Source: Macrostomum lignano
Lineage: Eukaryota
Direction of reading: 5' to 3'
Assembly: GCA_002269645.1 (NCBI GenBank)
Contig: NIVC01001146.1
Span: 1-28,053, forward strand
DNA: 28,053 bases
Both the position numbers and the translations under genes were made by a program. The notes below the pieces were generated by a model that did no database searches, was not told where the DNA came from, and was given only the letters and a program-made list of their open reading frames with translations. Positions 16,734 to 18,395 of this stretch are shown one piece after another. Position 1 is the stretch's first letter, and every line of letters starts with the position of its first letter.

Positions 16734-16812
16734 CTGTATCTTCTTGCGCAAGCGACGGCGCGCTGAAGAACGCAATCAGCACCGCGGCCAGCAGGCCCCA
16801 CAGAAAGTTCAT
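16734..16812 (-). CDS. Signal-peptide exon of the GYxRFamide precursor (MNFLWGLLAAVLIAFFSAPSLA-QEDT); spliced product 182 aa
   Basis: ATG at 16812, hydrophobic core and S-L-A cleavage motif. Phase-1 donor AG/GTGACA at 16733. The 126-nt intron (16608-16733) gives 79+470=549 nt in frame. An alternative phase-1 donor (GTACTC) further on cannot be excluded. Confidence 0.85.
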
Positions 16813-16903
16813 CGTAGCCTTTGTACTTCAGTGGCTAGCAGCTGAGTTGAAACGGTCTGAATTGGCTGCTCTGCTATCTAATGTTAAAGTGGATTCAAAT
16901 AGA

Positions 16904-17407
16904 TATCTATCTATCTATCTATCTATCTATCTATCTATCTATCTATCTATCTATCTATCTATCTATCTATCTATCTATCTATCTATCTATCTATCTATCT
17001 ATCTATCTATCTATCTATCTATCTATCTATCTATCTATCTATCTATCTATCTATCTATCTATCTATCTATCTATCTATCTATCTATCTATCTACCTATCT
17101 ATCTATCTATCTATCTATCTATCTATCTATCTATCTATCTATCTATCTATCTATCTATCTATCTATCTATCTATCTATCTATCTATCTATCTATCTATCT
17201 ATCTATCTATCTATCTATCTATCTATCTATCTATCTATCTATCTATCTATCTATCTATCTATCTATCTATCTATCTATCTATCTATCTATCTATCTATCT
17301 ATCTATCTATCTATCTATCTATCTATCTATCTATCTATCTATCTATCTATCTATCTATCTATCTATCTATCTATCTATCTATCTATCTATCTATCTATCT
17401 ATCTATC
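16904..17407. repeat. (TATC)n/(GATA)n microsatellite, about 126 copies
   Basis: Read directly; nearly perfect. Confidence 0.99.
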
Positions 17408-17439
17408 AGTTTATATTATAAATGGGAGAATAAACTTAC

Positions 17440-17546
17440 CTGAGAGGCAACGTGTCGTGCTGAGACAGCGCAGATCTCTGAGGCATTCAGCTCCGAATCC
17501 CTTTATCCCGTTGCAGCTCGACCCTCCTCCATCCCCAGCAGCCAAT
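17440..17546 (-). promoter_or_regulatory. Candidate promoter and short non-coding first exon of the neuropeptide gene
   Basis: Minus-strand consensus donor CAG/GTAAGT (intron starts 17439), TATA-like GATAAA at 17502-17507, CCAAT at 17542-17546. Possible acceptor TTTCAACTCAG at 16842 upstream of the ATG. TSS not determinable. Confidence 0.5.
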
Positions 17547-17706
17547 GGTTACTGTGTGGCGCCCCCATCCCTGTTGAATTGAAAATTTTAAGTGAGGCAA
17601 ATATCGCCTCAGTCAATTGAACTCAACCGTACAAAAGGCTTTTGAAAGTCATCGTCAAATAAATTAGCAAATTGCTTTTGATAGTCATTATTAGCCAGGC
17701 CATTTG

Positions 17707-17872
17707 CAGACAGACAGACAGACAGACGACAGACAGACAGACAGACAGACAGACAGACAGACAGACAGACAGACAGACAGACAGACCGACACAGACAGAG
17801 AGACAGACAGACAGACAGACAGACAGACAGACAGACAGACAGACAGACAGACAGACAGACAGACAGACAGAC
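17707..17872. repeat. (AGAC)n microsatellite between the two divergent genes
   Basis: Read directly. Confidence 0.98.
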
Positions 17873-18342
17873 CCTTAGTCCCTCGTCCCTCCCCTGTCTC
17901 GCTGGTGTCCCGCAGTTCCCTAACGGGAGCGGAAAGCCTGGTAACTTGTCGATAAGAAGGCAAGATATGAGAATATCTCCAGCTAACCAATGTTGCCATA
18001 TCAGACGCTTTGATTGTTGGGAATATTGTGCAGCCTTGGCTGGGATATCAGCAGTGAGAGAGAGAATGCGGAGTCCAAATCTTATCGCTAGCCATAGGTA
18101 TGAATATTCAGAGAAATCAGTGCGCAGTGACTCTGATTGGCAATAAAAACCCGCACCGAGTGGAAATATTGCAAAATCGTGCTGCATAAAATTCTCATGC
18201 GCACTGGCTTCGGTAACCTGTTCCTCACTAGCCGAGACTATATCAGTTTTATCTGCTCAAGTATATTTCCTAGAAAGCTATCTCGGTTAGGACTGGTAAT
18301 TCACTGTCATCATTATTATTACGAACTCAATAGTGGATCAAT

Positions 18343-18395
18343 ATGTGGAACAGCTGGATCTGTCCGACTGATAGACAGCTGCGACTGAGATCCAA
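18343..18395 (+). CDS. RPH3A-like: Rabphilin/Noc2-like Rab effector, coding exon 1 (MWNSWICPTDRQLRLRS-K)
   Basis: Resembles the WVCPxDRQLxLRxKL N-terminal motif of Noc2/rabphilin as I recall it. ATG at 18343 with in-frame TAG upstream at 18331-18333. Phase-2 donor AA/GTAAGT at 18396. Confidence 0.85.

Follow-up and report, generated by a model that had tools for sequence, protein, structure and literature searches.

Neuropeptides are cargo of dense-core vesicles, and rabphilin and Noc2 act in regulated exocytosis. A precedent for a transmitter gene and a vesicle-function gene under one regulatory region is the cholinergic locus, in which VAChT is nested in ChAT. These two genes lie on the same strand, have a common 5' exon and are conserved from nematodes to mammals. 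Bidirectional promoters are defined operationally by transcription start sites (TSSs) less than 1 kb apart, and the classical ones are CpG-island promoters, often TATA-less and enriched for CCAAT/NF-Y and similar sites. In the 28,053-nt stretch of Macrostomum lignano DNA analysed here (contig NIVC01001146.1, hereafter the window), an FMRFamide-like peptide (FLP) precursor gene on the minus strand and a rabphilin/Noc2-like gene on the plus strand lie divergently, head to head. Unlike the cholinergic locus, this pair is divergent and has no common exon, and we found no conservation of it in five distant protostomes. We also found no account of a neuropeptide/rabphilin head-to-head pair in the literature. 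We read the locus as an ordinary divergent pair of two separately recognisable genes, with a probability of about 0.6.

The first-pass annotation of this DNA had recognised a GYxRFamide precursor on the minus strand, and this identity held. By its sequence, the gene is a classical FMRFamide-like peptide precursor. The CDS part of the first coding exon (16734..16812) encodes MNFLWGLLAAVLIAFFSAPSLAQEDT plus one nucleotide and contains the signal peptide; residues 27-52 of the M. lignano entry UniRef A0A1I8JRL5 ('FMRFamide-related neuropeptides') are identical to it. The signal peptide, the pro-region and the C-terminus are all identical to the M. lignano entry of that name. By eye, a hydrophobic core and a small-x-small cleavage motif can be recognised in the N-terminus MNFLWGLLAAVLIAFFSAPSLA/QEDT. 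The coding intron (16566..16733, 168 nt) begins with the donor CAG/GTGACA (6.6 bits). The acceptor tttggcAG/AT at 16565 agrees with the splice in the M. lignano protein P0001 (QEDT/DSDVVQ); an alternative in-frame acceptor candidate lies at 16607. The last coding exon (16138..16565, stop codon at 16138-16140), delimited by translation and by this acceptor, encodes ...DSDVVQTRLLRDFDTLDKR, then 14 copies of GY[A/T/V]RF-G-KR (7 with Ala, 5 with Thr and 2 with Val) and then SAIVQEEPSMY, and within it a 24-bp repeat runs for 14.2 units at 16175-16515.

In each of the 14 copies, Gly and a dibasic KR site come after the terminal -RF. The signal peptide would direct the precursor into the secretory pathway, and 14 pentapeptides would be released by cleavage at KR and by amidation that uses the C-terminal Gly, namely GYARFamide, GYTRFamide and GYVRFamide. 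Peptides of the GYIRFamide type have been described from flatworms, and in M. lignano nerve cells with GYIRFamide immunoreactivity are known (PMC2919380; PMC2717932). The flatworm precursors of GYIRFamide, YIRFamide and RYIRFamide (PMC2919380) have the same plan of a signal peptide and tandem -RF/Gly/KR units, and the G-Y-x-R-F core is common to both. The predicted peptides are close variants of GYIRFamide, a known flatworm myoexcitatory peptide, but with Ala, Thr or Val instead of Ile at position 3. Whereas the peptide array in the window is clean, the deposited M. lignano model is frameshifted and has a dubious 5' extension; it is probably erroneous.

The plus-strand gene is, judging from its translated exons, a Rab-binding-domain gene of the rabphilin/Noc2 family with five exons, of which 1, 3, 4 and 5 were located by tblastn with rabphilin/Noc2 proteins. 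Exon 1 (CDS at 18343..18395) encodes MWNSWICPTDRQLRLRS-K and has the donor CAA/GTAAGT, and exon 2 (18937..19062) encodes ...LSKGWCNIYQHRPTFTTEELQLMDRVMRDNEALQAMERNRI-R. The zinc finger is divided between exon 3 (21320..21473, HYISKLESLKSLARGDGHSRCLLCGDR...RCCVCGL), which carries Cys 1-4, and exon 4 (23224..23394, STCVKCG...NDWQCKICHKEIQ), which carries Cys 5-8, while the SGAWF motif is encoded in exon 5 (24400..24573, LWKKSGAWFYQRLP...). Exon 5 is either spliced at CTT/GTAAGA (24535/24536) or terminal, with an in-frame stop at 24571-24573 that would give a 225-aa product without C2 domains. The remaining 3.5 kb contains a single AATAAA, at 24777, and a tblastn search up to the window end at 28053, for which eight mostly full-length proteins of the rabphilin/Noc2 family served as queries, revealed no C2-domain exon. 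The gene may thus encode a short, Noc2-like form that lacks C2 domains, or its C2 exons may lie beyond the window. An isolated RFGKR at 21953 on the plus strand was rejected as a nested peptide gene: it has no signal peptide and no stop, and with about one occurrence per 100 kb in control loci the motif is background.

The rabphilin/Noc2-like identity, also proposed in the first-pass annotation, was borne out at the protein level. The Pfam model PF02318 (FYVE_2, RabBD) matched with 36.9 bits against a cutoff of 27.2, spanning positions 3-117 of its 118, and the rabphilin-3A structure PDB 1ZBD_B matched with E=4.7e-15. A word-indexed protein search gave no match, but an exhaustive HMMER search found 176, the best ones named rabphilin-3A, Noc2 or DOC2B. 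The best 120 matches of the profile search were mostly vertebrate Noc2, with none from a flatworm. The protein keeps 23 invariant columns, including the eight zinc-ligand Cys (C81, C84, C106, C109, C114, C117, C160 and C163) and G174, W176 and F177 of SGAWF, in which S173 and A175 are at least 90% conserved. It also has the N-terminal motif W-x-CP-x-DR-x-L-x-LR that sets the rabphilin/Noc2 subfamily apart from Slp/Slac2/RIM, and here P8, D10, R11, L13, L15, R16, G22 and W23 are invariant. With the Rab-binding domains of rabphilin-3A and Noc2 (RPH3AL) it thus has in common the W-x-CP-x-DRQL-x-LR-x-KL-x-x-GW helix, the eight Cys and SGAWF. In contrast, its identity to any match is only 30-44%, and its zinc finger carries two insertions of ~8 aa and ~25 aa. 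By homology, the N-terminal helix, the FYVE-type double zinc finger and SGAWF would bind GTP-Rab3/Rab27 on secretory vesicles.

The sequence features listed in the first-pass annotation were all found, with coordinates exact or off by at most 1 bp. This includes the head-to-head arrangement itself, with the FLP ATG at 16812 (minus) and the rabphilin-like ATG at 18343 (plus), 1531 bp apart. Tandem repeats make up 44% of this gap and 52% of the whole window. The gap microsatellites are (TATC)126 at 16904-17407 and (CAGA)42 at 17707-17872; the latter, with no strand assigned, corresponds to the annotated (AGAC)n tract and sits between the two presumed promoters. The (TATC)126 tract had been given less weight than (CAGA)42 in that annotation. 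There is no intervening gene in the gap, where the open reading frames are microsatellite translations. No Rfam or tRNA features were found within the window, and Pfam scans of eight other window open reading frames gave no match. The gap is shorter than the mean intergenic distance of the M. lignano genome, which is roughly 3 kb (72,846 genes with a mean of 7.5 kb in 764 Mb), so that the closeness of the two genes is by itself not notable.

On the FLP side, the proposed minus-strand donor with its G at 17439 turned out to be a perfect CAG/GTAAGT, scoring 12.7 bits with a generic donor matrix. It is the only strong minus-strand donor in the gap, with ~0.006 expected by chance, and it makes a short untranslated first exon credible. 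Most likely, the FLP gene starts with such an exon, ending at 17440. The probable 5'UTR intron that follows from this donor (16878..17439, minus) contains (GATA)126, which is the (TATC)126 of the plus strand, and has ten candidate acceptor AGs, with the first exon base anywhere from 16877 to 16818. From this geometry, the putative untranslated exon 1 would occupy 17440..17480 on the minus strand. Its start, guessed at ~17477-17480, is placed 27-30 nt downstream of a TATA-like GATAAAG at 17507-17501, and a CCAAT at 17542-17546, inverted with respect to this gene, would lie ~65 nt upstream.

On the other side of the gap, the expected plus-strand donor CTG/GTAACT is present, with its G at 17941, but it is not distinctive, since it scored 6.7 bits and four other plus-strand GT sites in the compared region (17408-18342) scored 4.3-7.1 bits. 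The candidate untranslated rabphilin-like exon 1 ending at this weak donor (17873..17940, plus) is weakly founded. The acceptor AATAG ends at 18333 as annotated, 9 nt ahead of the ATG. At 18142 and 18185 the plus strand has alternative TATA-like sites, and from 18200 to 18342 no ATG occurs on the run-up to the rabphilin-like start.

We then compared the gap with classical bidirectional promoters. CCAAT motifs had been listed as a promoter feature, and they are indeed at 17542 and 17987 and, inverted (ATTGG), at 18136, but they are no more frequent than chance. Counting CCAAT and ATTGG together, 4 were observed against 1.8-2.4 expected in 860 non-repeat bases, and with a Poisson P of ~0.2 the count in the gap is not above chance. 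The fourth site, an ATTGG at 16861, had been overlooked. The gap has no CpG island, and its CpG observed/expected ratio is 0.49-0.76 against a window average of 0.84. The locus therefore resembles classical bidirectional promoters in its divergent orientation and in a predicted TSS spacing of 0.4-0.8 kb, but differs from them in its missing CpG island, its chance-level CCAAT and its 44% microsatellite content, and its TSS positions are inferred ones. If the putative FLP exon 1 is real, the TSSs would be less than 1 kb apart and the gap would be a bidirectional promoter in the operational sense. For M. lignano, RAMPAGE data are available (PMC5730564).

The linkage was compared with six rabphilin/Noc2 loci in five protostome species, namely Lottia, Helobdella, Candidula, Rotaria (two loci) and Galendromus, which are distant taxa with no flatworm among them. 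None had an RFamide precursor within 10 kb on either side, and the microsynteny by which the first-pass annotation would have supported the pair is thus absent at that distance in these species.

In an ordinary divergent pair, each gene would probably have its own core promoter inside the ~0.9 kb of unique sequence that separates them. If they are co-expressed, this would be passive, with both neuronal/secretory genes in common open chromatin and no selected cargo-plus-release module; that the pair is such a co-regulated, selected module is speculation. Some observations argue against the ordinary pair. A neuropeptide and a rabphilin/Noc2 protein are functionally relatable, the TSSs would be within 1 kb of each other with the putative FLP exon 1, and the conservation search covered distant protostomes, with no flatworm, and 10-kb flanks. 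Moreover, M. lignano promoters act proximally, within at most 2 kb (PMC5730564), which makes a sharing of cis elements physically likely. The rival reading is a true bidirectional promoter, with TSSs 0.4-0.8 kb apart and common neuron-specific elements, so that GYxRFamide neurons co-express the cargo and a dedicated Rab3/27 effector. Such a transmitter-plus-machinery locus would follow a logic analogous to that of cholinergic ChAT/VAChT. The divergent orientation with ATGs 1531 bp apart points to it, as do the perfect donor at 17439, which implies an FLP TSS near 17480, and the CCAAT ~65 nt and TATA-like site ~30 nt upstream of that start. We nevertheless consider it unlikely, because motif enrichment and a CpG island are both absent, nothing distinctive marks the TSS and the first exon on the plus strand and the linkage was not found in the five other protostomes. 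Rabphilin-family genes are also usually expressed much more broadly than a single peptide gene, and one relatable neighbour in ~100 neuropeptide-gene neighbour slots is, by our own estimate rather than a computed value, about what chance would give. In favour of a shared promoter, other invertebrates have stand-alone genes that lack C2 domains, so the M. lignano copy could be a specialised paralogue and not a pan-neuronal rabphilin. A more specific reading seems improbable to us, in which this paralogue is of the Noc2 type, lacks C2 domains, serves GYxRFamide neurons specifically and is transcribed together with the peptide gene from a single bidirectional promoter no longer than 0.8 kb.

Spliced-leader (SL) trans-splicing of one or both mRNAs at the AG near the ATG (rabphilin-like 18333/18334; FLP 16826/16825) would change the picture in another way. 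What look like 'non-coding first exons' would in that case belong to the outron, and the mature mRNA would not reveal the TSSs; the promoters would still be within the gap, but their spacing would not be fixed. As SL trans-splicing affects 38.8% of M. lignano genes (PMC5730564) and AG acceptors lie 9-13 nt ahead of the ATG in both genes, trans-splicing is a live alternative, and the weak cis-donor candidates on the plus strand fit it too. The perfect cis donor at 17439, however, favours cis-splicing of the FLP 5'UTR, and we regard trans-splicing as possible but doubtful. The two units may also overlap. In this case a distal or alternative first exon of the FLP gene would lie ~4.5 kb upstream, antisense to exon 3 of the rabphilin-like gene, and would be joined to the acceptor 13 nt ahead of the start codon. 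The genes would then be head to head with overlap, and the 1.5-kb gap would be part of an FLP intron. Evidence for this comes from P0001, a 5'-incomplete M. lignano model, since it begins with LTVSSRGQRTFSDSSFEI, which is colinear with the antisense of 21395-21327 in 15/18 residues (with 1-nt indels allowed), and then runs TKATM-NFLW from the AG at 16826/16825. This same 15/18 match led us to reject a translated spliced leader or a contiguous 5'UTR as the source of the P0001 N-terminus. The implied donor GAT/GTAGTG, however, scores 0.9 bits against 12.7 bits at 17439, and P0001 comes from an indel-ridden assembly, with frameshifts across its repeat region. It is also possible that P0001 arose as an artefact of gene prediction or was based on RNA evidence without strand information, and the antisense of coding exons is often ORF-like. 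Overlapping units are therefore a quite unlikely explanation.

The ordinary divergent pair leaves several results of use for M. lignano. We obtained a corrected 14-copy GY[A/T/V]RFamide precursor model, together with a flag on the probably erroneous deposited FLP model. For the rabphilin/Noc2 family, we obtained a first gene model of a member that our searches of protein databases did not retrieve. With true co-regulation of the pair, the 1.5-kb gap would offer transgenic work in this flatworm model a compact dual reporter cassette for its peptidergic neurons, and the locus would be a rare case of a neuropeptide gene physically coupled to a part of its release machinery. If the rabphilin-like gene were moreover a dedicated paralogue, the locus would be for peptidergic neurons what the ChAT/VAChT locus is for cholinergic ones, with cargo and release factor hard-wired together.

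The minus-strand gene is a textbook FMRFamide-like peptide (FLP) precursor. Its signal-peptide exon (16812-16734) ends at the donor CAG/GTGACA, and its last exon runs from 16565 to the stop at 16138-16140. We placed the start of this exon at the acceptor tttggcAG/AT since it is supported by the splice (QEDT/DSDVVQ) in P0001, the deposited protein UniRef A0A1I8JRL5 ('FMRFamide-related neuropeptides', Macrostomum lignano). This is the only database protein that the precursor matches. The two have an identical signal peptide (MNFLWGLLAAVLIAFFSAPSLAQEDT) and also agree in their pro-region (DSDVVQTRLLRDFDTLDKRGYARFG) and in the C-terminal GYTRFGKRGYARFGKRSAIVQEEPS, which assigns the window to a flatworm, M. 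lignano or a very close relative. The last exon encodes 14 copies of GY[A/T/V]RF-G-KR (7 Ala, 5 Thr, 2 Val); the peptides released from it would be variants of the known flatworm peptide GYIRFamide (PMC2919380). M. lignano nerve cells are labelled by GYIRFamide antiserum (PMC2717932). On the minus strand, we found no AATAAA or ATTAAA between 15000 and 16140. A few hundred bases beyond the stop (14453-15915) lies a 35-bp repeat with about 41 copies and a higher-order period of 109 bp.

The plus-strand gene encodes a rabphilin/Noc2-like protein. Homology places its exons at 18343-18395, 18937-19062, 21320-21473, 23224-23394 and, for exon 5, from 24400 to at least 24535. The conceptual product of 213 aa matches the Rab-binding domain (RabBD; Pfam FYVE_2, 36.9 bits, cutoff 27.2) and the rabphilin-3A chain in PDB 1ZBD (E=4.7e-15). 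An exhaustive HMMER search returned 176 protein matches with identities up to 44%. Among the matches listed, the top named ones are annotated as rabphilin-3A, Noc2 and 'DOC2B', and the named ones span chordates, cnidarians, arthropods, annelids, rotifers and nematodes. In an alignment of 16 sequences, the 8/8 zinc cysteines, the N-terminal W-x-CP-x-DR-x-L-x-LR...GW motif and SGAWF are kept; the zinc finger of the M. lignano protein carries two insertions. Intron 3 holds a lone KR-(31 aa)-RTRF-GKR motif (21866-21967, plus strand) in an ORF that continues into a 14-bp tandem repeat and has neither signal peptide nor stop. As a peptide it is probably a chance occurrence, its frequency in control loci being background.

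No C2 exon was found as far as the window end. If exon 5 is read through, the frame meets a stop codon at 24571-24573; over the following 3.5 kb AATAAA occurs once, at 24777. In the region 24536-24573, exon 5 is followed by a weak donor, CTT/GTAAGA, with ttacAG about 35 nt later, which may form a micro-intron; without that splice the frame ends at 24571 and gives a 225-aa protein without C2 domains. Since RabBD genes without C2 domains also stand alone in a rotifer and a mite, the exon 5 stop and the lone AATAAA make a Noc2-like product of 225 aa plausible, but unproven.

A first-pass annotation had proposed that the two genes share a bidirectional promoter, and all the features it listed are present. 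The ATGs, at 16812 (minus) and 18343 (plus), are indeed 1531 bp apart. We also accept as likely its untranslated first FLP exon, because the minus-strand donor at 17439 is a perfect CAG/GTAAGT of which about 0.006 would be expected in the gap by chance. It scores 12.7 bits with a generic donor matrix, above all homology-supported donors in the window (5.8-10.2 bits). We infer a candidate transcription start site (TSS) near 17480, which would fit a TATA-like GATAAAG (17507-17501, minus strand) and an inverted CCAAT at 17542. The 5'UTR intron would contain the entire (GATA)126 tract, and there are ten candidate AG acceptors between 16877 and 16818.

The plus-strand first exon is less clear. Its proposed donor, CTG/GTAACT (G at 17941), exists but is not distinctive, with 6.7 bits on the same matrix versus 4.3-7.1 bits at four other GT sites in 17408-18342. 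It would be equally good to assume an unspliced 5'UTR starting past the TATA-like sites at 18142 or 18185, as the 143 nt preceding the ATG (18200-18342) hold no upstream ATG. Just as good is SL trans-splicing, which affects 38.8% of M. lignano genes (PMC5730564), at the AG that precedes the ATG by 9 nt. The suggested TSS spacing of 400-500 bp is therefore one among several options, in most of which the spacing stays below 1 kb.

Two microsatellites, (TATC)126 at 16904-17407 and the smaller (CAGA)42 at 17707-17872, make up 44% of the gap. Read on the minus strand the first is GATA-type, and read on the plus strand the second is GACA-type; these are the two Bkm-like repeat units, but here they sit on opposite strands. 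The listed CCAAT motifs (17542, 17987 and ATTGG at 18136) are there, and we found a fourth, ATTGG at 16861. Four sites in 860 non-repeat bases are not above chance (expected 1.8 from composition to 2.4 from the window rate; Poisson P ~0.2), so they carry no information. There is no CpG island in the gap, the observed/expected ratio in its three unique segments being 0.49-0.76 vs 0.84 for the window. Neither non-coding RNAs nor tRNAs were found in the window. The spacing is smaller than the mean intergenic distance, roughly 3 kb by our own arithmetic from the gene count (72,846) and mean gene length (7.5 kb) of the 764-Mb genome (PMC5730564). Tissue-specific expression in M. lignano can be achieved with promoter fragments no longer than 2 kb (PMC5730564).

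Linkage in other protostomes did not emerge in a limited form of the test that the first-pass annotation had named. We compared six rabphilin/Noc2 loci with 10-kb flanks, all from outside the flatworms: Lottia, Helobdella, Candidula, Rotaria (two copies) and Galendromus. A six-frame scan of about 208 kb found no RFamide repeat array at any of them; the same scan recovered 14/14 copies in the M. lignano window. Where there was an upstream neighbour, it was a 125-aa gene without annotation, a PRMT methyltransferase gene, SCAMP on the same strand or a LIM/SH3 gene. SCAMP is a secretory carrier membrane protein. In Rotaria sordida (loci L004/L005, 1-1604 and 10001-10950) its gene lies on the same strand as a C2-less RabBD gene, 8.4 kb upstream of it. 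Here too the neighbour is secretion-related, which shows that such adjacencies arise easily.

The window is extremely rich in repeats, with tandem repeats over 52% of its length (Tandem Repeats Finder); simple or tandem repeats make up 15% of the genome (PMC5730564). Over a quarter of the window is a 7.5-kb satellite (4931-12439) in which a 21-bp unit (TCCCTCTCTCCCCGATCTATC) recurs about 363 times, with an extreme GC skew of about -0.84. An 82-aa Cys-rich ORF (2867-3115, minus strand; MDCKSCSQNCKCGPNCTPGGDCCKKNGCGCS...ACKCGTGCTPGGECCKRNNCHCSE) has two similar halves and a metallothionein-like look, and a Pfam search gave no match. ORFs at about 937-1744 (plus strand) contain retroelement-like motifs: the aspartic-protease-like FRVDTGAEANIFP, and QHVAGKDNAAADALS, typical of the C-terminal region of LTR-retrotransposon pol. 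Their Pfam search was also empty, and therefore they are probably a decayed LTR element.

The two transcription units might even overlap, if the first exon of FLP, possibly an alternative one, lay distally within the rabphilin-like gene. Without a start Met, P0001 begins with LTVSSRGQRTFSDSSFEI, followed by TKATM-NFLW. The LTVSSRGQRTFSDSSFEI stretch is colinear with the antisense of rabphilin-like exon 3 (21395-21327; 15/18 residues, single-base indels allowed), and it connects to an AG that lies 13 nt ahead of the FLP start codon. However, the donor of such an exon, GAT/GTAGTG, reaches 0.9 bits on the generic matrix, and the source assembly has obvious frameshifts, P0001 itself being frameshifted across the peptide repeats. 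For these reasons the 5' extension is probably an annotation artefact, and we regard an overlap as very unlikely.

A selected bidirectional promoter genuinely common to both genes is also unlikely. It would resemble the cholinergic ChAT/VAChT locus in logic, not in structure. Nothing intrinsic to the sequence says that the pairing goes beyond adjacency, since the motifs are at chance, the spacing is below the genome average, and CpG island, non-coding RNA and tRNA are lacking. For a genome that has some tens of genes for neuropeptides and a few hundred that are 'secretion-related', we estimate that about one such adjacency would arise by chance. Most likely (probability about 0.6), the FLP and rabphilin-like genes would be independent, each with its own core promoter in a common gap with about 0.9 kb of unique DNA. 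The components are of known kinds; divergent gene pairs are common, and this one is a new instance. Any co-expression of these independent genes would follow incidentally from the neuronal or secretory character of both.
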